Positions 3,295-61,742 of a stretch of 64,000 nt of DNA are shown here, piece by piece. The notes under the pieces were generated by a model. That model did not search any database and was not told where the DNA came from. It saw only the letters and a list, made by a program, of their open reading frames with translations. The translations under genes and the position numbers were made by a program. Within the stretch, counting starts at the first letter, position 1; every line of letters begins with the position of its first letter. This DNA comes from Mytilus edulis (lineage: Eukaryota), in contig NC_092353.1 of the NCBI RefSeq assembly GCF_963676685.1, positions 60,078,001-60,142,000 on the forward strand, in the 5' to 3' direction.

Positions 3295-3477
3295 TTAATT
3301 TTTGAAAAGTACATGTCACAAATAAAGATCTGATGTATCCGTCCTTTTATTGCAGATAAAATATTGACATATAATGGTGCTTAACACAAACTTTACAAAT
3401 ATTTTTAAAGATTTCTACTTATCTTAAAATTATGGAAATGATATTAGTTATCAAAAGTACCAGGATTATAATTTTAT

Positions 3478-3523
3478 ACGCCAGACGCGCGTTTCGTCTA
3501 CATAAGACTCATCAGTGACGCTC
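3478..3523 (-). ncRNA. Type I hammerhead ribozyme, copy 1
   Basis: Minus strand: GAGCGUCA-CUGAUGA-GUCU(uaugu)AGAC-GAAA-CGCGCG-UC^-UGGCGU. Stem I GCGUCA/UGGCGU, palindromic mini stem III; predicted cleavage between 3484 and 3483. Confidence 0.88.
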
Positions 3524-3832
3524 AGATCAAAATAGTTAAAAAGCCAAACAAATACAAAGTTGAAGAGCATTGAGGACCCAAAATTCCAAAAAGTTGTGCC
3601 AAATACGGCTAAGGTAATCTACTCCTGGGGTAAGAAAATCCTTAGTTTTTCGAATAATTCAAAGTTTTGTAAACAGAAAATTTATAAAAATGACCATATA
3701 ATTGATATTCATGTCAACACAGAAGTGCTGACTACTGGGCTGGTGATACCCTCGGGGACGAAACGTCCACCAGCAGTGGCATCGACCCAGTGGTGTAAAT
3801 AGTTATCAAAAGTACCAGGATTATAATTTTAT

Positions 3833-3878
3833 ACGCCAGACGCGCGTTTCGTCTACATAAGACTCATCAGTGACGCTC
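3833..3878 (-). ncRNA. Type I hammerhead ribozyme, copy 2
   Basis: Same sequence as copy 1, +355 bp. Confidence 0.88.
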
Positions 3879-4187
3879 AGATCAAAATAGTTAAAAAGCC
3901 AAACAAATACAAAGTTGAAGAGCATTGAGGACCCAAAATTCCAAAAAGTTGTGCCAAATACGGCTAAGGTAATCTACTCCTGGGGTAAGAAAATCCTTAG
4001 TTTTTCGAATAATTCAAAGTTTTGTAAACAGAAAATTTATAAAAATGACCATATAATTGATATTCATGTCAACACAGAAGTGCTGACTACTGGGCTGGTG
4101 ATACCCTCGGGGACGAAACGTCCACCAGCAGTGGCATCGACCCAGTGGTGTAAATAGTTATCAAAAGTACCAGGATTATAATTTTAT

Positions 4188-4233
4188 ACGCCAGACGCGC
4201 GTTTCGTCTACATAAGACTCATCAGTGACGCTC
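4188..4233 (-). ncRNA. Type I hammerhead ribozyme, copy 3
   Basis: Same sequence as copy 1, +710 bp; the array ends right at the stem I boundary. Confidence 0.88.
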
Positions 4234-4281
4234 ATTTGAAAAATAATTATTGTTGCTTGAAATTTAATCGCATACTATTAA

Positions 4282-5004
4282 GGTAGCACAATACAAAGAT
4301 TTTATAACTCCAACTCCCAAGTTTTAAAATGCTGTAACTTTCTTAAAAATACTTGAAAATTTATAAAAGTGGTAGTTTTGGATAGCTAACAGATTACTCT
4401 TTCAAATAAATGCAATGTTAGTATTATGCAACAATTATGTAACCAATTAAAATGTTAACTGTGTCTAAAATATTTTTCACCAAATTTCCACTTTCAAATG
4501 AAATTAGCTTCTGCATAGGTATCCCTAGAGGGTTGATTTTATTATATGTTGTTCCTATGGCCATTATCTACAAAAGGGTGTCTCATATTTCGGATAGAAT
4601 GTATAGAACAAATTTTACACCTAATTGAACATTATCTTCTTTTATGTGTTTAGGATGTTTACACTAATTAGAGATTTATGAGCGAATGGAACACCATAGA
4701 GACAATTTGAGACACCCTTTTGAAGCCCATGATGTGTTGATTAAGATTCCGTTAAAATTTTCTGTATAGTTTAAGAGATGATAGAGCTAATTTCATTCAA
4801 GTGAACTTACCCAGATTTTGCCACTAATTACATAACAATTGATTACATAATGATTGCATAATAAAAATATTGCATTCATTTAAAAGATTAATCTTGTATC
4901 TATCTATATATACCTCTTTTATTATTTTCTATGCATTCATAAGAAAGTTACAGCATTTCAAAGGTTAGTGATTGGAATTAAAAAAATCTTTGTATTGTGC
5001 TACC
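4282..5004. mobile_element. Kolobok-type MITE
   Basis: TIR GGTAGCACAATACAAAGATTTT plus a longer imperfect inverted extension; TTAA on both sides. Confidence 0.85.
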
Positions 5005-8015: not shown

Positions 8016-11000
8016 TCAAATTTTATCCAAAAAATTCGTTAAAGCTGGTATAACTAGGTTCATTCCTTTTCTCTTCCTGACTTCACCCACTACAGTTGTT
8101 GCTCTTGATTCTGTTTGGGAATCTAGCGGTTCTCCAGGTAAATATTGCCAATGATCAAACACACACTGTGGGAAAGCTTGTCCTCCTGTCTGGCCTCGAA
8201 GATCTTCTGTGAAACCTAGAATATATTTGTAAACAGTAAATATTTGTTTAAACTATGGTCTTCGTAATTTGTTTGGTTTATTGTTTTTCTCCCCGATTTA
8301 ACTAGATATAAAATGTGTAATGAATTGGGATTGCAATCTGGTGAATGTTGGAAACTAAGGTCTTTTGAGGAACTTTACTGTTGTATTTCACAAAACAGTG
8401 TATTGGATTCCATTTTTATAATTTTTCGTATCATTTTGGGAAAAAACATATATTTAAGAAATATTATACAAAACCAGGGCCAATATTGAAATTATATATG
8501 CATAAGACAAGACTTCGGATATTTGAATATGAAGCATATAATGGACTTTGAATAACTATATTATTATTCTTACCAAATGATTCGTTAACTGGTAGATAAG
8601 CTTTTATTTGATGTAAGGGAACACCTTCCTGTTGAACTGCATCAATAACATGTCCTCGTCTCTTCGAAAGTACATTGTAGACTCCTCCCATTTCTGTTGA
8701 GGGAACCTGTATTAAGAGGAAAAGCTTAGATATAACTAAAGTTGTATAGTAGATAATATGATGTATAAAATTTATTATGTTGTCAGGTATGTAAAAAACT
8801 ATCATTATAATGCAACGAATGCAAATAAGGACCGGCTAAATAGGACTGCTTAAATTGTCACTATTGCCTGAAACCTTATCACATCTAAATTACTAGTACG
8901 AATTTAAATAAAGTAATTATTGAAGTGCACTCAAATCCAATTGTACATTTGAAATTAAACAAAAACATTAAAGAAGGCAGAGGAGAATAGAGAAAGGAAA
9001 TTCAACTAACCTGGATTTCGACGAGGTACACAGGTTCCATAATTCTTGGTTTGGCTGTTAGCATTGATGCAATCATAGCTCTTCTTACAGCTGGCATAAA
9101 CTGACCACCCCCTCTATGACTTGGGTCACCATGGATCTTCATGTCATGTATATCGAAACGGACACCACGTAAACTCTCTTCACATAAAATGCCCTGAAAA
9201 TTAATAGTATCACAAGTTAACAAACTTTTCGTGCTGGTTAACATTTGTCAATTTCCTTGAAATTTTAACCAAAGGTATGGCATTTTTAAGACTTAAGTTA
9301 ATGCAAACAATTATTTGTCCATATTTTCTGTTAAAGAGGTTAACAAATGTCTATATATTATTTTTAGAAAATATTTTATATTAGTGATATATTATAATTC
9401 GTCTTATTTATAACTTCAGTTCTTCATTCATAACTTAACTGCCATCACTCACAATGGGGGGGGGGGGGCTGGGGTATGGTACGGAAACACTTTTGAATAG
9501 AATTAATAAATGTTTACTAAGCAGACGATTGTGGTTCTCTTTTAATCATAATAAAAATATATGAACTAAATTACTAACCTCCCCAGACGCCCACTGGAAG
9601 CCTGCTACTATAACGTCCTTGATGTCATGAAGATTCTGGACTCCTTTGGTGCAGTCTACCAGCATATTAGGACCAGAATTGGATGGTCCAAAACACCAGA
9701 TTTTCTTGGCCTGCATTGGATCAAAGTCATACTTGTCGACCAGATACCTTGTTCTTTCTTTAACATCTTGTGTGGCTGTTACTTTGCCCTGTAATCATAA
9801 ATATTAAACATGATTAAGACTTTGACCGGCTATGATGATATTTAATATACTTCATTATAAGTCCTTTAAAATTATGCAAGATAATAAATACTACTACTAG
9901 GAAAGATGTGATTTTGGTTTATTAATTTATGACAAAATCCTTCAAAAAAATGGCCCTTTCATTGCCATTATTTATCTCCAGCGAAGTATTAACTGGGCAA
10001 CACACTAATGTGGAGAAAAGCTAACCCCACCGTCACTCCAAAAATTAACAGCTGGCCTAAGGGTGTGAAATTGTTTTATATATGTTCATTGCTCACATCT
10101 GAATTAAATTTAACTATTGCACAATAATACGTTATCAAATAAACACTTACACTTTCAATATCAATAACGAGACCATCAGGTAGAGGTGATGCTGTCATGT
10201 ATATCCTGTTGAGTTTGTTTGCTGTCTTTGCCAGACATATCTGTTCAGATGTTGTGCTTACTGTCTCTCTGTAAGTGACTACAGGTTGAGATACCTATAT
10301 TCAGAAAACAATATGTTATTTAATATATATATAACCAATAGTACATGTAGAAATCACGATCTTAACTGAATGGAAATTAATGTACACTATTGTAAATATG
10401 TGGCCTGAAATTTCAAAATCGTATTTTTCGTTTTATTTTCGGTAATGAATGAGACCATGGCTGTTAAGAGATTATCGGAATTAATAGTTAACAACAGTAA
10501 CTTGTTGCAAAAGATTATATAGCAAGCATAAAATGCAATAACTACCTTTAGTGGAACACATGCATGTTCAGTTTCAAGATCTTTCAGACATATTTCCAGG
10601 TGTAATTCTCCAGCTCCAGATACAATGTGTTGTCCACCCTCCAGACCACACTGGACCAAAGGGTCAGACTTGGCAAGTCGCTTCATGCCTTCTACAAGTT
10701 TAGGTAAATCTGCTGCATTTTTAACCTCTACTGCTACTCTTACGACTGGACTAACTGAAAACTTCATTACCTGTTGAAACAATTTATTTTATAAAAAGAG
10801 TGTTAAAACTCTGTAACCGTTCTTTGATGGTATTAGCTGTGGACGGTTTTTTTTTTGGTATTATCTGTTACTGTTCTAATAAGTATTAACTGTTGCAGTT
10901 CGTAAAAACAGTTTTGTTGTGATATACTAGAGTAATCCCAATCCAATGTTATTCCACAACAAAAACATGGGGTCAACTTACAAAACGGACACTTAACATG

Positions 11001-14000
11001 CTTAATTTGGTATCAAAGTTTGCAAAATGTGAAATGCAAGATTATCGTTTTATTTCAGTTAATATATCGCAGAGAATTTTCCAACTTTATATTAAAATAT
11101 GAGTACTGCAATAACTAAAACTTTTAACCCAACTTCCAAATTTAAATTGTGAGGATTTGAATTACTTATTATATTCGTATCATACCTTCATATTGTGGGC
11201 ATGCTCATAGGTTGATATGGTTCCTGATCGTAGAAGGAATTTATCAATGCCAGACAGACCGACAACATTACCACAAGGTACGTCATGGATACCACCTGAG
11301 ACACCGAAACCCATCATAATCACGGTGCTGAAAAATAAAATAAAAATATATAAAAATAAATACTGTAGGTTGTTATCAGGGAACCAACTATTGCCCAAAA
11401 TTTCGTCCCGTTAATGGTTCCTTTTAAAGCTCACTTTACTCTTCGATATGGGTTTATTCAAATTGTTAACTTGCGACCGTATTCATCTGTTTTGTTAAAT
11501 AATGTTTCAATCTTCGTGCAAATAATAATTTGGAGAGTCACTTATTTGATTAAAGCCTGGTTTTGGAACATTGAACTCCGTTGTTTTACCTAGTGAGTAC
11601 CTAGTGAGTTTGATTGTCCATAAAAAAAAATTCAGGAAAAATCAAAAAAGACCTCATGACTGAGCAACTAGAACATCACACAAACCTGGTGTGAAATAAG
11701 ATTTATTTGCTCAACTAAAAAACTTAGCTCTGATGATTGAAGTAAATCTATCCAGACAGTGCTTCAAATTAGAAATCAAACTTGTGTTTCATTTGATTTG
11801 TAAAATTATAAAACCATTACCTTGGTATCTTCTTGACATACAGATCCCGTGTTGTGCCAGGTGTGTAGTCTGGGCCCATGATTCGTACCATTTGACCTGT
11901 ACTAACTGTGCCAGAGAAAACTCTACCAAAAGCATAAAAGCGTCCTTTGTTCAATGCTGGTACCATCTTCGAAATATACAACATCAAAGGTCCTTCGGGA
12001 TCACATGTTTTCATTGCTAAAATAGAATTTTGACATTGCCGTAAGAGAAGATGATTCAAAGCCCTTATAAGTTGTTTTTTTCTTTCTAAATAAAACAAAA
12101 GAGTTAACGTTGCAATGCCTCGGGTTGAGAACACAAAATAAAAACATCATTTATCTATTTTTAAATGCGATTTTGAATTATTATAGTATTACACTATCTG
12201 TTTTGAAATTGAGTACATATATGGTTGACCAAGAAACACTGTACCTACCTACTGCTGCTTCGTCGTCTTGTGGGCCTTCATATAACAATTCTGTTCGGTA
12301 CCTTTGGGCAGTTATTGGAGAAGGCAAATGAACTACGAACATTTCCAACAAAGCATCATCAACAGGCAGCCATTTCTTCATGACGGTTCTCATTAGGGTC
12401 TTGCCTTCGGTTTCTTTTTCCTCTGTTGATAATTTAACACCTATTTTGTCTACCAGTGTTAACAACTCCGCTTTATCCTGAGCTTTTGTCGAATGAAGAA
12501 CCTATAAATAAATACAAATATAAACGTATTGTCACGTTAAAGAAAAATGATGACATATTTTAAAATTTTTCAACAATGTACATTTAAATGAATTCGAAGA
12601 TGTTCAATGAAAATATGATCACCCTGTTGAGAATATAAATCAGGGCCAATTGGCTGAGTTCTCCAATATTACACATCTTTCATGCATGGTACATAATTAT
12701 AACTTAATAACTTCACTTGATAGTGTCCTGGTGTCCTCGAGTACAATTTAAACTTAGCGTCGAATCTAAGGAACTTTGATGTAGCAGATTCAGAAATTTT
12801 CATAAGGAGGCGCTAGGGGGTGGGGGTCCTTATTTATAGGAAGCCGCTCCAGTCATGCTTTTGGGATTCCCTGAAATAATCAACGAAATGTTTCAAACAA
12901 AAGATGGCCCGAGATCCCTGTTCCCTTAAATCCGCCTCTGCGTATTTCTGGTGTTTAAATTAATATTAAGAATAATAAATTCACACAGTTTTGCTTACCT
13001 TGTATAAAGGTTCCACAACAAACTTGTTAAAACCGCGGACACAATTTTCCTCTTGCGTTTTGTGCCATTTTTTCGTCTCTGGGTTGTAAAAATTATTTCC
13101 CCATAACTTCGCCAACATCTTGTCTTCACTGACACCAAACTTTTCAGCGTACATTTTTGCAAACCGTCGGAGGGTGAAACCCCAACGGTGCAAACCAGAT
13201 CCAAAAGCAACATTACATAGTGTTGGATCGACCTATAACAAGAATTAAACAATTTAAAAGACGAGTATAACACGGATTGATTGATTGATTGAGCAAAGTG
13301 ACTGTTTTTGACTGATTGATGTGACTTATTCATTAATACGAATCATTTTGTTTTTTTCATTATTAAAAAAAAGGTTATCAGAAAGAAAACAAAAACTTCT
13401 AAGACTCCAAGATGTCAAAAAACAACGCGCGCTTTTTCCCTTGTTTCAGTCATTTAAATTTATTTTAAATAAGTACATGTTTATGAATTATTATCATTAT
13501 TTACCATGATGTCTCCCATAGCGTCATCTGAGTATGTGGCCACCAAAACATTAAATCTCTCGACAACGCTCCTTAAACTTTGATAAAGTTCCTCTGGCTG
13601 CAACTGTGTTTCAAATACACATCTGTCTATCTTGTTAATCATCAAAACTGGTTTGATTCGCTCGCCTAAAGCTTGCCTCAACACTGTCTCCGTCTGCACA
13701 CAGACACCTAAAAGTACAAAATGTATTAAATGTTTGAATGTTGTTTACTTAACGTCCAGTGGCAAATGTTTCAAGTATTATTAAGGAACTCGTATATAAA
13801 ATTTTACGAAGTGACAAACAGATTTTCTAATAGACATGTTGGAAATGAATTCTGCGTTTATTCTTAACATTCAGTGTCTAATATCAGAGTTACAGTAAAA
13901 ACCACCAGTGACAACTATTAGAGGTAAGTAAACAGTACTTTATCGTTAAAATGTTACAATTTTTTGTAATAATAGGAAGTTAAATCAATTATCGGAGCAT

Positions 14001-15695
14001 ATTGTGAACTCACCACTAACACTGTCTACTACTACCAGTGCCCCGTCAGCTACTCTCAACGCCGCCGTCACTTCAGAGGAGAAATCCACGTGACCAGGAG
14101 AATCAATCAAATTGACGATGTATTCGTGAGACTCCTCCTTCTGGTGACTGGCGGGGAGGATCTTTGGATCGACTTCGTACAGTAAAGATACAGCACTGAA
14201 AATTGAAAAAAAGTTACCAGTTATTTATAAGAATAAATTGGTACAGAAATTCGGGGAGAGTGAAGGTGGAAATAACATTTCCAAAACGTTCAATTAACAA
14301 TAGGTTTATGATTGTTTTTGCATAAATGCTTTTTGCATTTCCCCTAGCTTCAAACCAATACATTTCAACATCTTTGACCTCTTTAAATTTAAGACTGATC
14401 CTTTTTCACAATCCCGAATCATCCCCCTCCCCCCTAAAAAAAAATGAAAAGAAAAGATATAAGAAATTATATTTATAAAAAAACAGCAACAACCAAACAC
14501 ACACATTTTGTAGAACATACGTTATTAATAACAATATAACATAATTCAGTATTCATTTTCAACCAGTGGCTGTGTCTGTTGATTTAGACAATCCCCCCTT
14601 TTTCGTCCGGTAAAAGTATTCTAATATGTTTTAAAATTGTAAAAAAACAAGACTCAACCATTTAACATGCATAGGCTTTTAGAATCCCGTAATAAAGATA
14701 GTGACTTATAGCTGTTACAGTAGCTATTTTGTTATTTTCGTAATTTTATATATATATCTTCAGTCTAAGAAAAAAAATATTTGCTAGACAGCTTTTTTTT
14801 CTTCGTCTCTCGATATATAAATATCAGGGGCGGATACAGACATTTTAAAAATAGGGTTCCCAGTCTAGGAAAAAAGTGGGTTCAAACCATTTATCCCCAT
14901 TCAAACGCATTGTTCGTTTAAAAAAAGGGGGTTCCAATCCCCAGACCCCCCTTTTGAATCCTCCACTGGGTATGTAAACTAACAACTTACGTCGATTTGA
15001 TTGTAATTCCCTTCTCCTGTTCATCTTTCCTGGTATCCATGGCACACTTGTCCCCTGCCTGGTGGGCTGCAATAAAGCCCGCTCGGGCAAGGAGGGAATC
15101 AGTGAGAGTGGTCTTGCCATGGTCAACATGGGCAATGACTGCCATGTTGCGGACATTGTTTGGGCAGTCCATGGCCCCTCTTAATTGTTCTATGGTGAAG
15201 TTTACCTGTAAAAGGGCGAAGTGTTGCATTTCAAGTATATATATTAAACTAATTTGACATTAACTTTTCAAATTTGCTTAATGTTAAAGTTCAAAATTTT
15301 AATATTAAAGTTAAAGGATATTTCCTATTCTGTAAATTTGAAATTGAGAAAGAATTTTCTGTAATGAAAGCTTCTTAGAAATTAATTTAAACGACTTACG
15401 GTATTATAGATTGAAATTAAAAATTGAAAAAAAAAAAAAAAAAAAGCAAAAACAAAATTGTTCCATCCTAAGTAAAGCCCGATATCCCTACCTTTTTCTG
15501 TTCTTGAGACCTACTTTCTTATATACTTCGTTATTTTCTTTATTGAATAAATCATTAACAATCAGTGTTGAAAAAATAAATGTATTTATCTTTGAAATCA
15601 TTAAACTGTTGTTTTTTAATTCAATTATTGCATCTTGAAATATTTATGCTATTGAAAAATCTATCATTCAATTTAAAAGTATATTCTCTTACCAT
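8016..15695 (-). CDS. EEF2: Eukaryotic translation elongation factor 2, divergent paralog (840 aa, 14 coding exons)
   Basis: Exons (minus): 15693-15695 (ATG only), 14991-15205, 14014-14195, 13505-13707, 12999-13232, 12249-12501, 11821-12016, 11186-11327, 10546-10770, 10151-10294, 9579-9788, 9011-9193, 8574-8706, 8016-8215. All introns are GT-AG with consistent phases; total 2523 nt, no internal stop. Motifs: [96 protein letters not shown]. Confidence 0.96.
14825..14968. mobile_element. Short hAT-like MITE in eEF2 intron 2
   Basis: Ends CAGGGGCGGATAC...GAATCCTCCACTG with G/C tracts; decayed relatives at ~12781-12940 and ~16355-16501. Confidence 0.55.
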
Positions 15696-15797
15696 TTTTC
15701 TTTTTTTCTATTCTCCTCTGAACTAGGCAACTAGGCCCTGTATGGGCTAAAATTTACTTTTCTCTCTTCAACGATAAGCTAAACGCTCACATTTCTA

Positions 15798-15833
15798 TAA
15801 TGACATAAACCCGCCAAACGGTAGCTATTTATA
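15798..15833 (-). promoter_or_regulatory. Core promoter of the eEF2 paralog: TATA box + Initiator
   Basis: Minus-strand TATAAATA at 15833-15826 and Inr-like TCATTA at 15803-15798 (A+1 at 15801). The 32-nt spacing is canonical, and the site is ~105 nt upstream of the ATG. Confidence 0.65.
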
Positions 15834-15919
15834 CCGTGTGTATTTCGCAATAAAATGAAATTGCACCATCAGTAGACATAGGTATTTCCCCAATTCAGAA
15901 ACTTAATTCATTCGAAATA

Positions 15920-15934
15920 CTTCTAGAATGTTCT
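15920..15934. promoter_or_regulatory. Perfect 3-unit heat-shock element (nTTCnnGAAnnTTCn)
   Basis: cTTCtaGAAtgTTCt, about 120 bp upstream of the predicted eEF2-paralog TSS. Nearby are a C/EBP-like ATTTCGCAAT (15842-15851) and a kB-like GGGGAAATACC (minus, 15881-15891). Confidence 0.55.
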
Positions 15935-16727
15935 TTCGTGGTAACGTAAATTATTTCGGAACGTATCTGTGGTTTACTTCAATTGACTCGTATCGTCTGC
16001 TTCTAAATTTAAAGAATGCGGCAATTATTGATTTCAAGTCTGTTTATTATTTTGTTGTATTCGTGAATTTAAAGTACAACGTAGTATCAATCCTTATGGG
16101 TGTTGTGTTAATGCAATAAATAGATGAAAATATGTAAACATTATATACGTACTAATCTAGTCGCTTTATAAAAATAAATATACATTGTACTTAAAATATA
16201 GGTATTTTTTGGTTCAGAGACACTCTGAGAGAGACAAGTTCTTGTGTCGTGTCTGCAAAATAACCTATGTATATTTTTATGAACTTCGCATTAGGGGTCG
16301 CTTGAAGATATAGAATATCGGTTACCTTAGTGGATAAATTAACTATGATATGGACCAATACAGCCATTTTAATAAGAGGGGTTCCCAACCCCGGATCAAA
16401 AAGGGAGGTCCAACTATATGCCCCATTTATGCATTTATCGTCTAAAAGGGGTTTACAACCCCGGACCCCCCCCCCCCCCCCCCCCACTCGGTCCGCCACT
16501 GTAGTACATTTCTTTTTCAAATAGACTGAAAGGTTTTTTCTTTAATTTTCAGCCTGTTACTTTTGTAAATGCCATTATGGTGTGTGAGACACGAACTCTC
16601 GTGTGTAATGTGCAGTCCAAAGCCAATATGTTGGTTTGTGAGTTTGAAATGAACACAATTTTTTCAGAGCATCCAGCTGTGAAATAGATTTGAATGTTCA
16701 GCAAAAAATATCACAGGCAAATATTTT

Positions 16728-17540
16728 AGACTCGGATCGACGTTCGACCTCTTATCGACGTCCGATCCTCAAATCGACGTCCAAATCGGATGTCACATTC
16801 ACAAATCGACGTCCAATATTTTGATACTCTAATCAGACGTCATCATCATGCATTGCTAAAATGGCGTCCGATTGATTGTAGTCTCCTTTAACCCGTACGT
16901 GTTCAATATCAAGATATCAGAATAAATTACTGGACTTAATTTACACTTATACATTTTTCTCCATTTGAATAATGCCTGCACCAAGTCAGGAATAAGTCAG
17001 ATGTTGTTCATTCGGTTGATGTGTTTTATCAGTTGATTTTGCCATTTGATTCGGAACTTTCCGTTTTGAAATTAATTTTTTTTCCTCGGAGTTCAGTATT
17101 TATTTTGTGATTTTAATTTTTATTATAATTGCTCACATCCACTTTATTTGAACTCTGGTGTATATTTTGTCGCATTGGAAATAATTCCACATCTCTTTAT
17201 TTTCATGTAAATTAAAAAATTGATATTACAACCTGTTTACATACTAATATCAGATAAATTTAAAAAAAACAAACATTTATTTTTAAATATTCGATCTTAA
17301 ATCACAAATATGTTTAAAGGTCTAAGGTTTCAGTTGCTATCGGTTCGGTTCAATTTTGTATTCTGTGTCCAAAACAGACGTCAAATAGAGAGGCTAAAAA
17401 GAGGACGTCGATTGAGAATGCCAAAATATGGACGTCGATTAGATAAGCCTAAAATTGGCCGTCGATTTGTAATGTTATTTTATTGTGACGTCAATTTGGG
17501 GAACGGACGTCGATTAGAGACTGGACGTCGATCTGAGTCT
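16728..17540. mobile_element. Degenerate TIR element with ~21-bp periodic ATCGACGTCC subterminal repeats; contains a SINE-like fragment (~16970-17200)
   Basis: AGACTCGGATCGACGT... at left is the inverse of ...ACGTCGATCTGAGTCT at right; no clear TSD. Confidence 0.65.
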
Positions 17541-18196
17541 TACATATATGTTATAGATTTAGTAAAATTGAATAGTCTTAACTAAAAAGAAAAATGTCTC
17601 TCTTTATCTCGTGCAAATTCGATTCGTACACAATGAAATATTTTAGAATACACTGATTAATTTTATGCACTTTGCAATAATTTGCAGTGCTTTAAATTCA
17701 CAGTTTTTAGTGAAATTATCTCCAAGTTATCAATTGTCCTCGGTGATTAACTCAGGGGTCTAAGTACATAAACTTTAGTTAACTCTGGGAACAGTATATC
17801 TGACATATATATGTTCCTGGTTAACTGTAATTGTTGAAGAATACAACAAATCACTTCTGAGAATTGTAATGATCTACCAGCTAGCTGATTGTCAAATAGT
17901 TTCAAGCTATTTGAAACGAAATGGACTTACACACAATTCTCTTGTCGGAAACTTCAGACATATTAAATCTGCTCAGACTATCGTTTTTAGTTCATGATTT
18001 GTATTTCAAAATTACTGTTAATTGGGCCAATACTGCAGAAAAACGGACCAAACTTGAAAAAAAGAATATAGAGAATAATGGTTTCTGTGTAATCATGATA
18101 ATCATTATATTTTATAATATGCATAACAAACAGAGAATACGATAATATAAAATAGTAGTTAAAATATATGTATCATTTATTTTGTATCATTACGGC

Positions 18197-18563
18197 CACA
18201 GGTATTTGGGGAATGGACCCCCCCTTTTTTTTTGACCTCACTAAAATAAAATTTTGGCGTTTTTTTTATTCATTTACAATTTTCTACAATGTATAAACAC
18301 ATATCAAGTCTCAACAATCCATTGCTAGTCGATTACAATAATTTTTTTACTATCCATACGAGCCCCAAGTGAAAAAAGCTTCTTTTTTCACTTGGGGCTC
18401 GTATGGATAGTAAAAAAAATATTGTAATCGACTAGCAATGGATTGTTGAGACTTGATATGTGTTTATACATTGTAGAAAATTGTAAATGAATAAAAAAAA
18501 CGCCAAAATTTTATTTTAGTGAGGTCAAAAAAAAAAGGGGGGTCCATTCCCCAAATACCTGTG
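18197..18563. mobile_element. Fully palindromic 367-bp foldback element with 8-bp TSD
   Basis: 182-bp arms (18197-18378 / 18382-18563), 3-nt loop, ~2 mismatches; ATTACGGC duplicated at 18189-18196 and 18564-18571. Confidence 0.92.
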
Positions 18564-19381
18564 ATTACGGCGATGATTTATGTTTTCGCTAATAATCGGT
18601 AATCTAGCTGAACCGGGATGAAACAAAACAAGGTAACTCAATTATGGTGCACATGTTGTGCCTTATATGGATGAAAGTACGTTGAAGTTTAACTTTTCAC
18701 TACTATTCATGATCCAAAATTCTTGAATTGAAAATGCAAGTTCTGACTGATGTTATCTAACGGAAAAGACCGAATGCACACGGACATCGATCGTGCAAAC
18801 TGGGTCATCAAGCCGGTAAACAGGATACACAGGTAAGCTGCAGTCATTTCAGGAGACAGATTGTCAGGTTCGTATGGAACATGTAGAGTATTTCTTATTT
18901 CTTTTGTGACACAATGTTCGCGATTTAAACACTTTAATAGTAGTCTGATCTTTTAGGCGAACTTGTCTTTTAAATGTCCTAAATTATGAACCAGGTCATG
19001 GCCATCATTTTTTTTATTGACTAATGTTTTGCGAAAGGACGAGATATTATTAAGATATTGTCACTTTCTCCTATTTCGAAGTTATGAAGCGTTGTAAAGT
19101 GGCAAATATTGAAAGATGACTTCTCAAGAAATGAATTAAATCTCGGAGTTTTTTTGTTCTTTAAAAAGGGGGGGGGGGGGGGGTGCATAAAAAAGGAGTG
19201 GATCACTGATCATCACTCAGTATGTAAAAATGTACATGTCATGAGCAAAATTTATAAAGAATAGAGAAAAAAGGCTCAAAACCCCAACGTGTCATGTACA
19301 AATTGAAGGACCCCCCCCCTCTCCTTTAAAAAAAATTCCAGATCATCATGAGATGATCATAATATTTTATAAACCATTTAT

Positions 19382-19601
19382 GAGGGTCTGGATGGGGGGT
19401 GGTCTGTTATTCTGTAAACATTTAATTTTCACCCCTTTTTTCTCTAATATGCTAATCTTCAAAAAATTAACCCCTTTTTTCTCTAATCTTCAAAAAATTA
19501 GACCATGCATTTCTCTAATCTTCATTTTTTTGCCCGTTATTCTCTAACCTTCATTTTTTAAGGGCATTATTCTTTAATCATTTAACCCCATCCAAACCCT
19601 C
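19382..19601. mobile_element. GAGGG...CCCTC MITE with 6-bp TSD
   Basis: TIR GAGGGT(C/T)TGGATGGGG; ATTTAT duplicated on both sides; internal TTCTCTAATCTT repeats. Confidence 0.8.
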
Positions 19602-19947
19602 ATTTATCATGTTTATAAATGGAACTGATTTTTTTCTTCAAAGAAGCATGTTAATAACCTGAATGTTAAACTAACGTGAAAGGAGGTTTGAAGGGGACAA
19701 AGTTGGCAATGACCCCACCCCCTAAAAAATCTCCAAAACTTTTCAAAAATACTTTTTGGCATGAAAAAAATAAAGTGGAAACTGACTTACTTCCTTGCTC
19801 CATCTACATGATCTAGTTGTATCCTTCACTACTTGTACTAGGATATAAAAATATTTCTATGTAATAATCTGGACATAGCTTACAGCAAATAATTCATGTT
19901 CTATACATGTATATCTTTACATTTTAGATACACAATAACTATCAAAG

Positions 19948-22900
19948 ATGCCAACACTAGTATACTTTCCAGTTAGAGGTAGGTATATATAATTATTTAA
20001 CTATGGTTTCCTTTTTTAATATTAAGGTTATTAAAATAACAATTGATTTTCTCATTCCAGTGTATGTTCATTTCTTTTTGTTGTTTTTTTAAGCCTTAAA
20101 TCCACTCAAATTAATGTTTTGTTTTTGTTTTATGATATTCTACATGTACACTCAAATGTTTTTTTTCTGAATTATTTTAGGTATCTTCTATAATAGGAAT
20201 ACTTTCAATTCTTTTAATTTTATACATGTAACTACTTCATTAATTGATTTCTGCTTTCTTTTCCTTCTTACTCAAAACATTTTTATGCAAAATTGATGGT
20301 TAAGATTGTAGTTCTCAGGTAATATTGATAATTTGATCTACAATATCATTTATCAAGCTTTAATATTTTGTTATTCAGGCCGAGCTGAAGCTATGCGCAC
20401 ATTGTTGACTGATCAAAACATAACATATGAAGAAGTAAATGCAGGACCCAGAGAAAATTGGGTAGAAAACTGGAAACCAAAGATGGTAAGCATAAAAAAA
20501 TGACATTTGACTTTTTAAAATCTGTTTTTGTACATGCTGTATAAACAAATTAAAGGAACACAATTTGTTTAATTTTTTTTTCTTCAATCATAAAACTCTA
20601 CACATTAAACTGAACAATGAGCAACCAAAACCCCAACAAAAAACTAGAGATGAATATGCTTGATTTAAATCTTTCTGTCCAAGTGTTCGCTTATAGAATA
20701 CATTATACATTTCGTTATTTGTGCATTTGATTGACATACAAATCTACAACAGTACAAATGTATGTTTAGCATAGATCCCAATAGGGGCAATATGCATATC
20801 TTAGCTTAAATAATTCTGTATATTAAAAAAAACCTCATAAAAGATACCAGGCTTATGATTATGTACACCAGACACATGTTTGGTCTACAAAAAACTCAAA
20901 TTCATATTCAAATTATTTATTCAAGAAAACTCACAAAGAGCATAAAATGAACAATATAAATGCATATGTACATAAATATTGAGAAAGAGTTATAGCTGAC
21001 AAAGAGATCTAATACACACATAAAAAAAAAGGAAATATTATATTATATGGTATGATAAATATCAAGGGAGACAACCCTGTTCATAATCTTACTAAACAAT
21101 ACATTGTAGTTCTAATTGGCTTTAAAAACCTTTGAACATGGAAGCTTGAGCACTCTGTATTTTGTCAAATGACATTTCTTTAAACATGTTAAAAAGAAGA
21201 CAAAAATAGAGATTTTTTTCCTTTAAAGTAGGACATTTCATCTCTCTATCATATGATTGGTCTTGATAATTACTTGAGTAATCCAGTTTAAAAAAAGATC
21301 ATTTTAGTTGACATCTTAACCATGCTTAAGATTATACAATCTGCAAATAAAAGCCCAATAAAGCATGTTAAGTGTCAGATTTCAATTTATGGTTGGTAAA
21401 TGAGGGCCCTCATGGGGTTTTTGATTATGTGATTACTTGGCCGTTTTTTTAATGATTATTTGATTATTAAGCCAAATATTTCATGATTATTTGATTACCT
21501 AGGACTGTATTTTTAGTTTATGATTATTTGATTACTAAAGATAAGCAAATATTTAATGATTATGTGATTATATTGGCAAAAAAATGGTGATTATGTGATT
21601 ACTAGGACACCCCCCCCCCCCCCCCCCCCCCCACCCCCCCATGAGGGGCCTCGTAAATCAAATCAAACAAACAAGATTGACCTTTGAAACAAACTCTGCA
21701 AGAATAGATTTGATTACCCTGCTGTTTGAGAGTCATTTAATAATTCAGGATGTATCTGATTTCAGCAATTTGGCCAGTGTCCATGTTACACAGATGATGA
21801 CGGTTTCCAACTGGTGCAGTCTAATGCAATACTGGCATATCTTGGCAGAAAATATGGTAAACTTATAATTATCTACATGTTTTGATGCCTGCAAATAGTA
21901 GAAGAGACGGGGCATTAAGGTTTTTATGCTCCATCTGAACAATATTAAAGAGGGCATACTGTTTTTGTTTCTAACCATAGCTGTAGTGGAGGGGCATTAT
22001 GCCCCACCTAAATGAGTAGAGAGACAATTTATTTTCTTTCTGGTCAATCTTTCATGTACATTTTGTATCGTGTTAAAGTTCTTGGTTATTGTAGTTTACA
22101 ATGAAATTGTGGTCGATTGACTGGAAATGACTGGATCAACTTGAAAACAAAATCACCTTTATATTTTTATTCGAACTGTTTATTTATTAGGTGGTTCTGT
22201 TGTAATTCACTCTTGCTGGTGTTAAAATAAATCAGAGTTAAACAGGGTGCATGAATGCAAGTAATTTTAAGTATGAATGTTCTGATTTATGACCTGTAAA
22301 ATCACCAAATGAATATATCCCTACATGTCCTTTTATTGAATTTGAAATACTAATGATATTTTTCATTTTCAGATCTTTATGGGTCAGACATTAAACAGGC
22401 ATCAATATTAGACATGATGAATTCTGCTGTAGAAGATCTCAGAGGAGCTTACGTTAGAATGATTTATCAAAACTATGTAAGTAAATCCTATCAATAAAAG
22501 GAGATGTGTGTTCATCTTCACTACCAAAAAGGGGAAAGTACATGAAAAATACTACACTTGAAAAATAATTGGATAAAAGAATTTTTTTTTTATAAAAACA
22601 AAACCAATATCCTACATTCTCTTGTTTTTACCATGTCAAACAAGATGTGGAAAGCAGATTTGACATGACTTGATGGAGTTGAATGCAAAATACATATAGC
22701 ATAATAAATGAGAACAGACTTCAAGTGGTTCATCAAAGAACAGTTGGATTCATATGATCAGAGAAAAAAATCAGTTTGACCAAACAATTATTGGTTCATG
22801 GTAGATGTGCTGTTCTAGAGTTAAGTACAAAATGTATATTATTTGCGTGTAATATACATAAATGTATATTGTAGGAAGCAGGAAAAGAGCCATTCATTAA

Positions 22901-37473: not shown

Positions 37474-40400
37474 CTAATTATCACAATCCCAATTTTGATA
37501 TTCATAATTGTATTTAGAGTTGTACACAGCAAAACCAGTGATGTCCAGTTCCTTTCCAAGTTGATTATTGTTGTAGTCCGAACTTTTTGCAGCATCAGGG
37601 ACTGCTGTTTTTGTCCCGATTGCTCTCCAAGCTTCTTTCACTTTTCCAATAACTTGTTTTGCAAGATAGACAGTCGCCAACTGAAACATGGAATCCTGAA
37701 AGCACAAACAATCATGAATGGTATATCTTCAATGTTCATATTCCATTTTTTTTGTCTAAAAATTATCAACAAGGATTTTTGACCTCCTTTTGTAAGCATT
37801 AAGTTTGAATTCATTTTAATCTCGTCAACAAATGATAAAGCCGCAATAAAACCGATTGAAATATTTTATTTGTGTGCTATAATTTTTTTTAACGTCCAGT
37901 GGCAAATATTACATGCTAATTCCGTCTGTAAACCAAACAGCAATAACTGTTACTTCAATAATTTGTGTGGCCGGAATGAAGGACAGGTTGCGTTTTACCA
38001 GCGGAACCCGATTTGAAAGAAAGAGAGCATTTAGCTTTGCACCAGGCATATCAAGAACTCCTTAAATAGTTGTGACAAGGTTACTTATTGCAGTCACAAG
38101 TCATAATATAAAAGACAGGACTAAAAAGGTGAAGCCAGGCATTCTTTGCTCTTACTTTTAAATGATAGAACAGCAAGCTATAGAGGACACAAAAACGATT
38201 AATCTGTGAATATTATATGTCACTGATAGTGAATACATGGTCTATATACCATGATACAAAGTTACTAGCTTACCGTTTCAAAGCCATAAAGTGAAAGACT
38301 CTTCTGCATTTTACTTAAGTCAAGGGACTTTTCTAATTCATCAAGACCCTGTGTAACACTTTCATTGAGATTATCTCGTCTAAAACTTGTAAACGAAGTT
38401 TCTCGACTGTAACTGTATAAACCTCCAAACCACGTGACGCTAGTATCCAGATATTTTTGGAACTGAGATACGTTTGGTGAACTTGTTTCATCTAATGAAC
38501 TGAATGGATCAAAATGGTTATTTGATAAATTGGAAGCATCTTGTTCTCCTGGAATACTCATTGAACTTGTATTGCTGATGAAACTTGAACTTGCACATGG
38601 TGGCCCTAATTCATTGCAGTGGTTATCGTCATCTTGCATTAAATTATCGCCTGCTTCTGCGTTACTATAGCCACCATCGTGGTAAAGGTTTTCCACGTCA
38701 GCATCATCATCTTTACCCACCTGCAAACATTGAAAGTTGTCGTCCAAGTGCTCAAGACCAAACGCGTCTGCATCACAAACAAGCTTTGGTCCATATTTCT
38801 GGATACTCTGATGAGGATGTTCCGTACATTGCGGTCTAACACAAAGCAAGGTACTCATAACATTGTCTGGAACATCGCCACGAGCTCTTAAGTCAAACAC
38901 GCGGAGGGATTTGGATGGTATTCCGGATCTTACTGATACAAGTTTGCAGCTCTCTTCGGTTAAAACATTAAAACATCCATCTCCCGACGAATGATGCATC
39001 TTCTTTAAGACGAGCATTCCTTGTTTTGAAATAATATGTTTTTGTGGTTTCTTTATCTTTCTGAGTTTATCCATCCAATCTATATCTTTTGGCTGTTTTT
39101 GTGAGAGGATTGACTTTTCGGTGTTTGAGCTAGACCCGATGTGTCTTCTGTTTTTATGCTTTTCAGGAACATGCTGTCTGCCTGTCGGTACGACAAGAAA
39201 ATGATAAAAAAATAAATATTGTTAAATTTTGAAATCGAAATTTATAACATATATAATAACTAATTGGGCTACACATGGCTTTTTCCTAAAAAGTTTGAAA
39301 CAGTGAACTAGCATGATTCCTTCGTGCGAAACGGGTAAAGATATTGCTTACAATCCGTTACAAAATTTTAATTTATTGCTTCAAGGGTTCGGAACCCTCC
39401 ACAGTTTCGGTTATGGGTACGCGTAGTGATCCTTTTTATTCACTACTGCAGGTTTAATAGCTTATGTGATTGTATGACAAGAATGCCCACGCATGCAGTG
39501 TTATTAAGAAACTCAGCTGTAATTCTTGACAGAAACATAGGTCGAAGATGCATTACAATTAAAAGCAGACATTGTCATCTGTTCTTCAGACTTTTTATGA
39601 CGTGTTTATGCTAACGGATAATCTCTTATAATATATTAGTGTTTTACTATTGTTTTTATGTAAGTTTTTTTTATGCTTCGTGCCGATTTTATGAGTAAAC
39701 CCATTTCCAAATTTTTTAATTTCCCAATTTGTTCTTATGTTGTGCTGTTCCACTAATGTCCCAGATCAGGCGGAAGCTGAGCGCTCACGAAAACATGATT
39801 CACCATGCCAGGATTGCTTCAGGAAGTTTTAAAGATAACGGTTTGTGTTTTTATGCCCCACCTACGATAGTAGAGGGGCATTATGTTTTCTGGTCTGCCT
39901 CCGTCAGTTCGTCCGTCCGTGCGTCCGTTCGCTTCAGGTTAAAGTTTTTGGTCAAGGTAGATTTTTTCTTATTGTTGAGAACCGATCGGAGACAAATATT
40001 TGCTTATATCTACGTCATTTGAATATGTTCATTGCCATTAAATCACATCTGCTTACTTTGGTTGTTGATAATACACCCAATATTTAAACACATACACGAA
40101 AAAAAGCCAGATGATGGAATTTCAGTTGAACGACAAAACATAAAATATACCAATTTCTTAGTGGCTGACATACACAAATTTAATATGCAGATTGACTTGA
40201 CTTGCAAAACATAAAACATTTTCTGTATTACTTTTCTTTGTACGTATAAATGAATGAGCTGTTGTGACGAAAAACCGTTTATATTAAGAGAACAGTAGGG
40301 AACGTAGGTAAAATGTCTACCACCGGAAAAAAACATTTGGTATGCGCGAAAATTTCCAAATATTCAGAAAGTGTATTATATGATATTGATTACCTTTAGA

Positions 40401-57300: not shown

Positions 57301-60300
57301 TAAATGGTTCCCCTGTCAAACTAATTATAAATGTAACATAAAGAATGGGACAAAATCAATAAAATTACATATACGATGACTTATCTGGTATTTCAAGTAT
57401 TACACAAATGAAGGATTACTAAATCATATCACTGATGAGTCTAGACAGTTTAAAATCGTGTTATGCAAGCAATGTACAAACATATTTAAAATACGCGAAC
57501 ACCAAGTAACATTCTTCGATGGTTTAAATAACAAATGCATGAAAAAAATATATGTACACGAAAATTAACACCACAAAGCAGTGGTAAGTTTAGTTAAGCA
57601 ACGTCACCATTGTTGCAGAGTTTGTTCCTAGTCGACGCGTCGTTCATACTTCTATAAAACAGCCACACGATTACAAACAGAAACCCTTCTAACCAAACAT
57701 TGTAAGGAATCCCTAATGAGTTTATTCATGATAACTATTATATATATAAATAGAACGTGTTATTATAGGCTGTTAACAGATTGAACCAAGGAGCTAAGAG
57801 AACCGAAATAGAATCACTAAAATGCACTCAGTTCAATGGATCTCAGAAAAATGAAATAGAATGTATGAAAAAGAATATTTTCAGAATGAAAGATGAGATA
57901 CATGAACTACAAAATGAACTATTTTCCTGTCAGGATGAAATAAAAGATATAAAGGATGCTGTTATTGACTGTAGAAAGGATATAGAAGAAACAAATGAAA
58001 AACACATTCCTCATCACATATTTAAGATTAGATAAATCATTCCTTTGCTATATATTTATAAATATGCATCGGTTTGATTTCAAAATCATTAAAAAAATGA
58101 TAATTCTTGAGCAACAAAATACGTAAAATATAATGAGTCGACATTTCATGACAATCAAACAGAGCGAGTTTATGATGAAAACTGAAATTAAACAATTGTT
58201 TGAAATTTAAATTTATTCATCTCGGGTTTTCGAGCGTTGTTCATATGACCCCAATTTTTATGTTTTAACATTTTTATAAACATGTTAACATGTTTCAAAC
58301 AGAATACATAGACACAATTTAATTAATCTTTAATTCTCAGCAAATCACCTTTCGCATATGCTTCATTTGACACCAGAAATAACATTTTATAATCGTAAGA
58401 ATCTTATTTCACTTATTTCATTTGTTCAAGCTTAAACTTTACAACACATTTATGACTCAATTTCGCAACACCCGTTTAAATTGTTGAAAGTTGTAAAAGT
58501 AGTTACTAAAATGTCCCTTTTTCAAATAAACCTTAATATTTGTTTAATCAGGGTTAGGGTGGCTATCTTCTGACACCGATGTACCGTTTGAGTCCTTCTC
58601 CTTAATAGTATTTGTTCATTACAAAATCTGCGGAACGATCTTTATTGCCCTCAGAACATGTGGTCTTTATTCAAATACAAACTATGAAATATACAAATAT
58701 AAATCACGCATATTTTTTTTTATTATTTAAGAATGTCAACTTAGAGTTTTGGAAGATTGGAAAAGACAGGATATTGTATTCTGTGATGAAACACAGGGAT
58801 ACAGAGAAGCATTTGAAGAGGCTAAAAAACATCACATAGTGACAATTATCGGCGGTCCTGGTTCCGGTAAAACAGCAACAGCAAGACATATAGCACTACT
58901 GTTCGAAAGGCTTGGGTGGGAGGTTGTCCCTATATGTAAAGAAGAGGAAATACTACGATATGGAAACTGTCATATTCGACAAGTGTTTCTGTTAGATGAT
59001 ATCCTAGGTTCTTTTGCTGTAGATATGAGCAGATTTAATAATATAGTTTCATGCGAGATAAACATAATAAGATCACTTAATGATAAGTCAAAACTTTTGC
59101 TCACATGTCGAAAGTCAGTTTATAACGAGGCTATAATATCAAAACCATTCGTGCTTGAAAATATTGTTGACTTAGAAAGCATGACCAGCGTGTTAAATGA
59201 AATAGAAAAAATGAAAATTCTTACAAATCATTGTTCAGCGGCAGACGTCGACAAAAAGTTTTATAATAAGTTATCTTTAAAGAATACAAAAATTATGTTT
59301 CCATTTTTGTGTCAATTGTTTGCAGCTAATGTAGAATATCAGATGCTTGGCTCAAATTTTTTTGAAAGGCCATTTGAATATATAATTGAAGAAATGAGTA
59401 AACTACAAAAGACAAATACCGCGCAATATGTGTCTTTGGTGTTATGTCTAGTCAACAACAAACAACTATCCAATGAAAATATGCCTTCAAATCATGTAAA
59501 GAAAAGGATTTACAACTCTTGTGGATTAGATAGAGGAACAGCAGATAGAAAGATTTTCGATGCTTTGTCTAATATTGAAGGTACTTTTGTAATGGAGATA
59601 GGACATGACTATTCGTTTATTCATGATTCAATTTACGAAGCCATTGCTTACCACTATGGGCAGGAATTTCCGGAACAGATACTGGAATTCATGCCAAGTA
59701 ATTTTATATTAAATAAAGTGATTGTAGTTGGGAGTCCTACGTTTAATGATTTAAACATTAAGATAAAAGAAAGTCATTTTCTAAAACTAGCCGAAAGACT
59801 GTATTTGGATCTAGAATCAAACAAACTGTTTGATGTTTTTATGAACAAGGCTTTAACATACCAGCCTTTCCTTGAAGTGTTCATTGAACTGATCAGGAAG
59901 AAACCGTACGAGGATTTTAAGTTTACATTTTTAACTCCACGCATTGGTAACAGTGATCATTTAATAAATTATGATGACCTAGGTGAGAGGAAATTTGAAG
60001 ATATTTACCGTGATGAAACAATAAGAAGAGAACTATTAAACGATAAAAGGGAACGAGAATCACTTGAAGGCAAAATAAGTCAATATGTCACACATTCGAT
60101 CAGATTGATAAGTTGGGTTGTTTATTACGGGCACACTCGTCTTTTACAAGAAATTGTTAATCATGTTCTTGATCATAACGATTCTACTGACATCGTCTTC
60201 GGTTCAAATATAGAAGAACAAGCCAGACTACTATTATTGTCCGTTTACAATGGCGATCTATGCTTAATAGAACTAATTATTAGGTATGTAAATAAAGAGA

Positions 60301-61742
60301 GCCTAGGCGCTACACCCTTGTATATGTCCGACGGTTGCCTGGAGTCTAATTATCATAGAACTCTTGATCCTCTAAATGCAGCATGTTACTATGGTTTATT
60401 ACAAGTTGTAGAACTATTAGTACAGTCTGGTATTGACGTCAATTTAGACAACTATCATGAATTTCCAGTGTATGTTGCAACATATAATGGATATTATGAG
60501 ATCGTAAAATACTTAGCTGAAAACGGAGCAGATGTCAATGCTTTTAAATCCGGATTTACAATCTTAAATCCCAGTGTACCACCCTTATATATAGCATCAA
60601 TAAAGGGATATTCCGCTATAGCTAAATGTCTCATTCAAAACGGTGCAGACGTGAATATACCTTTACATAGTGAAATGACAGCTTTATTTAGAGCTTCAGT
60701 AGGGGGTTACATAGAAATTTTAAAAATGCTTGTAGAAATCGGTGCAGACGTCAACTTTTGCAACTTTCGTAACAAATCACCACTGTGTGCTGCTTCAGAA
60801 GAAGGCCATTTAGATATTGTTTTGTATTTGATACAGAGCGGTAGCGATATCAACTTGTGTGACGTGTATGGCAAATCACCACTTTTAGCGTCAATAGAAA
60901 CTGGTCACTTTGATATAGTAAAGCTTTTGGTGGACTATGGGTGTAAAATAAATTCTCAGTTAACTGGTAACATTTTGCCACTTACCTCTGCATTAATGCA
61001 AGGAAATGTCGAAATAGCAACCTATCTTATCCAAACGGGTGCAGATTATAACATGCAAAATGAATATGGAGTGACGTCTATACAACTTGCTCTATGGAAG
61101 AATCATACAGAAATACTGCACCATATTATAGCACTTGAAAACAAAAATAAACCGCAAAGTGGCAATCTCAAATTATATCAGCTGTTAGTAAACATGCATA
61201 AGTTTGAAATATATCCGGAGACCGTTCCTTGTACAAATGAATGCGTCAAAGCCGAAGGACTGAACTATAACGAGCATCGTCTAGCTCTTCTATCATTCAT
61301 TTCAAGAGGTTCTAATGGGGATGATTTAAAGCACTTATTAAAGCTTGGACTAGGCAGTAAATTTCATGCTGAAAAGTTAGACTCTCTCCTATATTATATT
61401 ATAACGGAGGCAGGCGTGACAAAACGTGTTGATAAAGTGCAATCATTACTTGACTTTGGCATACCATCAGATTTTTGGGATTACATATATGTATTTCTTT
61501 TAAAACAAGCAACAACAGTTTTTGAACAAAAGAAAACGGTTTGGAATAAAATATCCTTGAAGTGGTTAAACAACACTAAAGAAATGTTGATGACGTTCGT
61601 TCTGGATATTTCACGGGGTGGACCAAATTCAATTTCAAGGAAGCATCTACATGACTGCAAAATGTTTGAATTTGATGTCGAAGTATATTCTTCCATAATT
61701 TCTTTACTTAAACAACGGACAAGAAGATTATCTATTAAATAA
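51366..61742 (+). CDS. TM anchor - DZIP3-like HEPN - coiled coil - STAND (nSTAND3-type) NTPase - ankyrin repeat protein (~1270 aa if fully spliced)
   Basis: Exons 51366-51471 (hydrophobic helix; joining inferred from phase), 55510-55701 (EEINFLRI...ALRFIFD...ILFP), 55974-56218 (DFDSSLLYKLIRN...PPTSGW...DIERIRCYRNKIAH...FLKQW), 57769-~58030 (heptad coiled coil), 58732-61742. The donor of the coiled-coil exon is not canonical (see findings). Confidence 0.7.
51610..51745. repeat. Imperfect hairpin repeat
   Basis: AGTGAAAATGGGATATTGCTTGATA pairs with TATCAAGCGATATCCAATTTTCACT. Confidence 0.6.
52854..53003. repeat. Imperfect hairpin repeat
   Basis: AGAATAACCATACATTGTCTCGAAATAT pairs with ATATTTCGAGACAATGTATGGTTATTCT. 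Confidence 0.75.
53899..55039 (-). mobile_element. Internally deleted hAT transposon (ZNF862/TTF-zinc-finger type N-terminus)
   Basis: TIR CAG(G/T)GGTCGAA(T/A)TTA; 8-bp TSD CCCTGGAA (53891-53898, 55040-55047); TACTGGTCC subterminal repeats; ORF remnant MWKFL...RKRKYQKSWEKDREWLHY...MNCTIC. Confidence 0.88.
53915..54482. mobile_element. Kolobok-type MITE nested in the hAT element
   Basis: Long TIR GGTTCATGTGGACCCTATGGCTAAAATGGCCGTATTTTCACCTCAAAAT; TTAA on both sides. Confidence 0.88.
58732..61742 (+). CDS. Terminal exon: P-loop STAND NTPase + winged-helix region + ~8-10 ankyrin repeats
   Basis: Uninterrupted ~1000-codon frame after acceptor ttaag. Walker A GGPGSGKT (58851-58874), Walker B VFLLDDILG, LLLTCR, FPFLC, FIHDSIYE. 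Ankyrin units PLNAACYYG, PVYVATYNG, PLYIASIKG, ALFRASVGG, PLCAASEEG, PLLASIETG, PLTSALMQG, SIQLALWKN. Confidence 0.92.

Follow-up and report, generated by a model that had tools for sequence, protein, structure and literature searches.

Phosphorylation of the elongation factor eEF2 at Thr56 is the main brake on elongation in energy stress, hypoxia and calcium signalling, and this brake is usually regarded as acting on one essential factor. Phospho-Thr56 eEF2 is detectable in a mussel and increases under stress (PMC7711521). A mouse T56M knock-in is viable and grossly normal, with unphosphorylated eEF2 and raised translation (PMC12112062). Here we describe an eEF2-family gene (hereafter the paralog) with Met at this site, encoded on the minus strand of a 64,000-nucleotide stretch of the Mytilus edulis genome (GCF_963676685.1, NC_092353.1, positions 60,078,001 to 60,142,000 of the forward strand; hereafter the window), together with a canonical eEF2 gene found elsewhere in the same assembly. 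The reading that we favour, with some reserve, is that the paralog encodes a translocase with a specialised role, altered at its decoding tip and no longer open to eEF2K at the canonical site.

Ria1/EFL1 and Snu114/EFTUD2 are eEF2 paralogs with the same domain set, and are the only eEF2 duplicates named in a survey of translational GTPases, which does not cover the eEF2-like clade described below (PMC4342817). Both differ from the paralog in having large insertions or N-terminal extensions, and the exons of the paralog match them far worse. When PDB was searched with three exons using phmmer, the closest relatives were eEF2, not EFL1, Snu114 or EF-G, and exon 2 matched eEF2 at best with an E-value of 1.5e-27 as against 1.8e-13 for EFL1. 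An orthologue of EFL1/Ria1 or Snu114 was rejected on the length of 840 amino acids (EFL1 has about 1100), the lack of a large insertion relative to eEF2 and the weaker matches. Archaeal EF-2 paralogs resemble the present case in that a second EF-2 with an altered domain IV tip stands beside a bona fide copy, but they are without the diphthamide site, whereas the animal paralog retains the diphthamide His and its motif (PMC6143161). The literature that was searched on eEF2 paralogs, mollusc eEF2-like genes and Thr56 variants yielded no description of this gene or its clade.

Canonical eEF2, represented by the second copy of this genome and by human, zebrafish and yeast structures (1n0u, 7oya, 6z6m), is like the paralog in length and five-domain order. 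The alignment is mostly gap-free, and the P-loop, switch II, NKxD, His694, Asp696 and the His of HRGGGQ are identical. The paralog differs in evolving faster, in sample-dependent expression, in Met at position 56 and in several residues of the domain IV tip.

The gene occupies positions 8016-15205 of the window, is intact and has 14 exons (Table 1); stop-free segments of the minus strand hold the whole eEF2 sequence in pieces from about 8019 to 15205. The 840 amino acids derive from 839 codons in 13 coding exons plus an initiator Met from an upstream exon. Exon 2 opens with Val2 straight after an AG acceptor, like other animal eEF2 genes, and the N-terminus of the closest named relative, Pecten maximus XP_033741781.1, reads MVNFT, which bears on the start at exons 1 and 2. 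Reads and contigs were compared with window positions 9250-15249 for junctions and differences. Nine junctions (exons 2-11) were seen directly in RNA-derived contigs or reads, all of them GT..AG on the minus strand; the positions of the other three follow from GT-AG sites, reading frame and homology, and for one of these the end of an X14 contig that enters exon 12 gives further support. The joined model is open over all 840 codons with no stop and no frameshift, in agreement with the initial annotation, which was made from the sequence alone. The joined protein was used for translation, pairwise alignment and the classing of variants, while searches were run exon by exon. The Pfam scan of single exons recovered all five eEF2 domains, with GTP_EFTU, EFG_III and EFG_IV over the cut-off and GTP_EFTU_D2 (domain II) and EFG_C just under it.

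With phmmer, exon 2 gives a gap-free alignment to fungal, insect and vertebrate eEF2 chains of solved structure, covering their residues 2-73 (E-values 1.5e-27 to 4e-24). In this alignment, the Met of the switch I motif KCAMDTR lies opposite the Thr of RFTDTR or RATDTR. The eEF2K-type acceptor Thr56 in its RFTDTR context is absent from the paralog and present in the canonical copy of the same genome. The residues just before it are also substituted (Thr53 to Lys, Arg54 to Cys and Phe55 to Ala), and the equivalent of Thr58 is retained (residue 59 counting Met1). The Met codon showed no variant among the differences listed, either in the RNA contigs or in one covering DNA contig from a related species. 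The replacement of Thr56 by Met, the loss of Thr53 and the retention of Thr58 had all been described in the initial annotation and stand as described. It had further stated that the gene keeps all GTPase motifs; the motifs are intact (P-loop AHVDHGKT, switch II DSPGH and G4 NKID, as well as the diphthamide loop HRGGGQ), but the region is otherwise not near-canonical. Because mouse T56M eEF2 is viable and non-phosphorylatable, Met at site 56 plausibly makes the paralog refractory to eEF2K at the canonical site. The substitution is identical in the two cases and abolishes Thr56 phosphorylation in the mouse (PMC12112062); there, however, it replaces the sole eEF2, which is otherwise wild type, whereas here a natural Met occurs in a diverged paralog beside a phosphorylatable eEF2.

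A search of the same assembly (1.37 Gb) with exon 2 returned exactly one other locus, 68% identical, on contig C4. This locus holds an intact canonical eEF2 gene of 842 amino acids with AGETRFTDTR (G000:C4:~7172646-7188405), so the paralog is not the sole eEF2, which the initial annotation had proposed to check by such a search. With the domain III exon as query, only these two eEF2 genes and one distant relative were detected. Aligned over their whole length, the two proteins need few gaps and show 60.8% identity. The genes have nine intron positions and phases in common; three others are found only in the paralog and two only in the canonical gene. Since identity has fallen to this level and nine intron positions and phases are shared, the duplication is old and DNA-level. 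A retrocopy was rejected, as introns are present and common with the canonical gene, and so was a haplotig or assembly duplicate, given 61% identity and different introns.

The kinase is also encoded in this genome. An alpha-kinase gene on contig C9 has human eEF2K as its best match (7shq, E-value 7.9e-36, as against 1.9e-21 for MHCK A). Besides this multi-exon gene, further alpha-kinase domains lie in long uninterrupted frames of about 300 amino acids at four loci, L007-L010 (Table 1), which may represent a lineage-specific expansion of intronless alpha-kinases.

The relatives of the paralog bear on when the kinase site was lost. When 1.84 billion representative sequences were scanned in full by HMMER with exon 2, the closest named relative was the Pecten protein mentioned above, annotated 'elongation factor 2-like' (P0002), which is 79% identical to the paralog across its first 133 residues and also has the KCAM motif. 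A word-indexed search with exon 2 added further exon-sized open reading frames from public assemblies, some of them with KCAM. Together these sequences define an eEF2-like clade with a signature in exon 2: GKTT, SLLA(K/R)AG or SLLA/S-K/R-AG, and an intron after IKST. The Pecten protein shares GKTT and SLLA(K/R)AG with the paralog and groups with it in trees; it differs in that its model breaks off or is wrongly joined past about residue 133. Its name is automatic, and no study of it was found. In trees from short alignments, a clade of five rows including the window gene was separated from canonical animal eEF2 with support 95/93 (152 columns), and an eEF2-like clade of 24 rows was likewise separated with SH-aLRT 95 (72 columns).

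Most members of this clade have Thr at site 56 (KRATDTR, KCAT). Met is found in the window gene, Pecten, P0268, P0269, P0270, P0007 and P0274, and Leu in P0273. P0274 apart, the Met and Leu sequences form one subgroup of eight rows together with a single Thr sequence (P0333). We infer that an older eEF2-like lineage existed first and that Thr56 was lost later, in the branch with this genome and Pecten. Kinase escape as the reason for the existence of the paralog, which the initial annotation had implied, does not fit the retention of Thr56 (KRATDTR) in most exon-2 sequences of the clade.

Further searches were less informative. Word-indexed protein searches, limited by their length window, found no full-length orthologue. 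With the Pecten N-terminus as query only canonical fragments were returned, and with exon 10 no word was common with any candidate. A metagenome scan with exon 2 was dominated by prokaryotic GTPases (best identity 60%), and a look-up in a sequence atlas gave only generic GTP_EFTU clusters.

Met at the Thr56 position is present in 15 of 134 scored representative eEF2 N-termini. One example is a Trypanosoma grayi protein (P0236, automatically named 'putative elongation factor 2') with GDKRIMDTR, which has a natural Met at the kinase site, like the paralog, in an otherwise normal switch I. The paralog could on this account be a tissue-specific isoform of ordinary function, maybe expressed where eEF2K is not, in which the change from Thr to Met is tolerated and essentially neutral, with no adaptive bearing on translation under stress. 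That Met is common here in natural eEF2 of other eukaryotes, that site 56 varies inside the clade between Thr, Met and one Leu, and that T56M mice are grossly normal (PMC12112062) would all agree with this. The KCAM motif, however, is kept in this genome, in Pecten and in some six other distinct exon-2 sequences, and the three preceding residues (Lys, Cys and Ala for Thr, Arg and Phe) changed together with site 56. This has the look of a state that is fixed and maintained, not of drift, and we regard a neutral change as unlikely.

The second region that sets the paralog apart is the tip of domain IV. The canonical tip loop SKSPNKHNR reads AKTANKLNR in the paralog, corresponding to P580A and H583L in yeast numbering. 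In the diphthamide loop (HADAIHRGGGQ) we found A695G, A697P and I698S, with His694, Asp696 and His699 retained; in alignment with solved eEF2, the His of HRGGGQ, the predicted diphthamide acceptor, is present in its GGGQ context. The conserved tip, made up of the triad His583, His694 and His699 with Pro580 and Ile698, is thus incomplete, as positions 583, 580 and 698 are altered, and Ala697 is changed as well. His583 is part of the histidine-diphthamide triad that touches the codon-anticodon helix (PMC4896748), and in yeast eEF2, -1 frameshifting results from the mutations P580H and I698A (PMC6193676). With P580A, H583L, A697P and I698S at its tip, the paralog probably differs in its translocation or reading-frame properties. 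It may translocate with another fidelity or speed, or may have moved to another ribosome-linked task.

Divergence is not confined to the tip. Counting unique changes where the other copy and a distant eEF2 used as outgroup (P0150) agree, we found 132 in the paralog and 46 in the canonical copy (chi-square 41.6). Of the 499 sites common to the canonical copy and the distant eEF2, the paralog retains 367. Between the two copies, identity ranges from 51% in the G' subdomain to 79% in domain III. The picture of a near-canonical eEF2 with one site changed, which the initial annotation had conveyed, does not survive these figures, given 60.8% identity, the excess of unique changes and the loss of four tip residues.

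Such divergence raises the possibility that the paralog is neofunctionalised and no longer a general translocase, with the eEF2 fold put to some other use linked to the ribosome, such as the occupation of stored or dormant ribosomes, specialised quality control or frame-shifting; the loss of Thr56 would then simply have followed release from eEF2K. EFL1, too, has Met at this switch I position, which would fit such a course. About three times as many unique changes as in the canonical copy and the alteration of five conserved tip residues (A695G included) would be expected in this case, and translocation was given up for other roles by both known ancient duplicates of eEF2, Ria1/EFL1 and Snu114 (PMC4342817). 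Against it, neither the motifs for catalysis and GTP binding nor His694, Asp696 and the diphthamide His with GGGQ have been lost; the paralog also retains about three quarters of the sites counted above, and has none of the insertions or extensions of EFL1 and Snu114. Expression and constraint, given next, point in opposite directions, and overall we consider a new function possible but doubtful.

Of the words sampled from the 7.2-kb gene, a share of 0.27-0.36, about that of its exons, was present in fourteen runs from six studies with four species labels. Contigs of X14 show splicing at the junctions predicted and have word depths of 770-2982, and an unspliced intron contig has a depth of only about 30, so the X14 material is RNA-derived. 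Raw RNA reads of X24 gave low coverage with few spliced reads (10 and 3 at two junctions), and among the raw RNA reads of X21 (1.3 billion letters read) none fell on the paralog exons. Given spliced material in X14 and X24 and none in X21, the paralog is transcribed and spliced, and is much less uniform across samples than a housekeeping factor. The sharp differences between samples speak for a new function.

When RNA contigs or reads from closely related samples were compared with the window, the listed differences included 17 in exons, of which 13 are synonymous and 4 non-synonymous. All four replacements are conservative (I>V, E>D, R>K and S>N). With 567 synonymous and 1950 non-synonymous sites, pN/pS among these differences is about 0.09 (binomial P 3.6e-6 vs neutrality), an estimate that spans exons 2-11. 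The paralog is under purifying selection, and its strength across the length seen speaks against a new function. The initial annotation had named absence of transcription and a dN/dS near 1 as observations that would count against its proposal; the gene was found to be transcribed and correctly spliced, and the ratio among closely related samples to be low. X14 transcripts also contain an 18-nt in-frame tandem duplication at 13055 in exon 5, giving a second KKWHKT in the G' subdomain, which looks like a length polymorphism of the paralog.

The same data bear on whether the paralog could be decaying after duplication, foreign in origin or an artefact of the assembly. Only the speed at which it changes would suggest this. 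The 840 open codons, the spliced transcripts in many runs, the low pN/pS, intron positions as in animal eEF2 and an orthologue annotated in the Pecten genome all disagree with it, and at 61% identity the gene is not a haplotig of the canonical copy. We rejected a pseudogene on the basis of its open frame, spliced expression and constraint, and consider this whole group of explanations very improbable.

Two intron segments of the gene also attract RNA sequences. Within the intron between coding exons 3 and 4, about 40 nt (13734-13773) are matched by thousands of partial X21 RNA reads and by many contigs in all four runs, which always run on into unrelated sequence; this suggests a high-copy, transcribed repeat fragment. 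In the AT-rich intron after coding exon 2, a G/C-rich element (14845-14940, GGGGGTTCC...CCCCAGACCCCCC) draws RNA reads with several fixed differences at places 14906-14919, and is probably a dispersed repeat.

The account that we prefer is still that of a specialised translocase. On this view the product would work as a translocase on the ribosome in certain tissues or states, eEF2K could not switch it off at the canonical site, and it would go on driving elongation during phosphorylation of the housekeeping eEF2. A role in anoxia, heat or infection, as put forward in the initial annotation, would be conjecture. Thr56 would have been lost inside an existing eEF2-like lineage, on the branch that unites this genome with the scallop Pecten. 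Less probably, the new Cys-x-Met pair of switch I might serve as a redox-sensitive switch in place of the phospho-switch. Several points weigh against our preferred account. The tip is without His583 and has changed Pro580 and Ile698, and the paralog may therefore not be an ordinary translocase. The retained equivalent of Thr58 could still be phosphorylated. As most members of the wider clade have Thr56, the loss of the kinase site came later and is not why the paralog exists. The comparison with an orthologue covers the first 133 residues of Pecten XP_033741781.1.

Table 1. Exons and motifs of the paralog (positions in the window) and additional alpha-kinase loci of the same assembly
Feature	Position	Strand	Evidence or remark
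Candidate initiator ATG, end of exon 1	15693-15695	-	nearer of two sites with ATG directly followed by GTA or GTG within 15206-21000; stronger donor GTAAGA
Coding exon 2: N-terminus (VNFTIEQL), P-loop AHVDHGKT 15110-15133, switch I Met	14991-15205	-	Pfam GTP_EFTU, E 2.2e-17
Met codon, residue 57 counting Met1, at the Thr56 site	15038-15040	-	CAT on + strand, ATG on minus
Exon 2/3 junction	14195>14991	-	X14 contig and X24 read
Coding exon 3, switch region motif at 14081-14104	14014-14195	-	junctions in RNA, GT-AG, Pfam GTP_EFTU
Coding exon 4, G4 motif NKID 13625-13636	13505-13707	-	RNA junctions, GT-AG, Pfam
Coding exon 5, G' subdomain	12999-13232	-	RNA junctions
Coding exon 6	12249-12501	-	RNA junctions, GT-AG
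Coding exon 7, domain II	11821-12016	-	RNA junctions; GTP_EFTU_D2 E 7.2e-7, 30.0 bits (cut-off 30.3)
Coding exon 8	11186-11327	-	junctions with 10 and 3 spliced raw X24 RNA reads and X14 contig
Coding exon 9, domain III	10546-10770	-	RNA junctions; EFG_III E 3.5e-13
Coding exon 10, domain IV; tip loop AKTANKLNR 10205-10219, Leu codon 10211-10213	10151-10294	-	RNA junctions
Coding exon 11, domain IV	9579-9788	-	junction 9788>10153; X14 loose end 9578 enters exon 12; EFG_IV E 2e-11
Coding exon 12; diphthamide loop 9101-9133, predicted acceptor His 9116-9118	9011-9193	-	GT-AG, homology, X14 loose end; EFG_IV E 8.2e-9
Coding exon 13, domain V	8574-8706	-	homology and GT-AG; EFG_C E 1.9e-5, 25.1 bits (cut-off 27.9)
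Last coding exon, stop codon 8016-8018	8016-8215	-	homology and GT-AG
Alpha-kinase locus L007	G000:C5:29791824-29792399		
Alpha-kinase locus L008	C5:11145277-11145858		
Alpha-kinase locus L009	C5:11098895-11099404		
Alpha-kinase locus L010	C1253:38192-38701		

Elsewhere in the window, one 997-amino-acid frame on the plus strand (58749-61742) combines an N-terminal nSTAND3 P-loop NTPase domain (E-value 2.3e-29) with a long array of ankyrin repeats, and looks like an innate-immunity-type STAND/ankyrin gene. On the minus strand, positions 3469-4342 contain two nearly identical sets of short frames at a distance of about 355 bases, with the same 39-amino-acid frame at 3712-3828 and 4067-4183; this is a tandemly duplicated segment. 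A Ser/Asp-rich frame of 269 amino acids, also on the minus strand (38265-39074), has no Pfam match.

Taken more broadly, and held only tentatively, the data would fit two parallel elongation systems, in which an eEF2K-gated eEF2 is accompanied by an old eEF2-like translocase with a remodelled tip that has shed its kinase switch in the branch of the window gene and Pecten. In certain tissues or states, phosphorylation of the main factor would then leave the second one translating, or translating with altered frame-keeping. If so, a constrained and expressed second eEF2 without the kinase site, beside a normal one, would amount to a built-in bypass of the elongation brake, a question that is directly testable in an animal that tolerates anoxia. 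The altered anticodon-mimicry tip would likewise be a natural experiment on the roles of His583, Pro580 and Ile698 in reading-frame maintenance.

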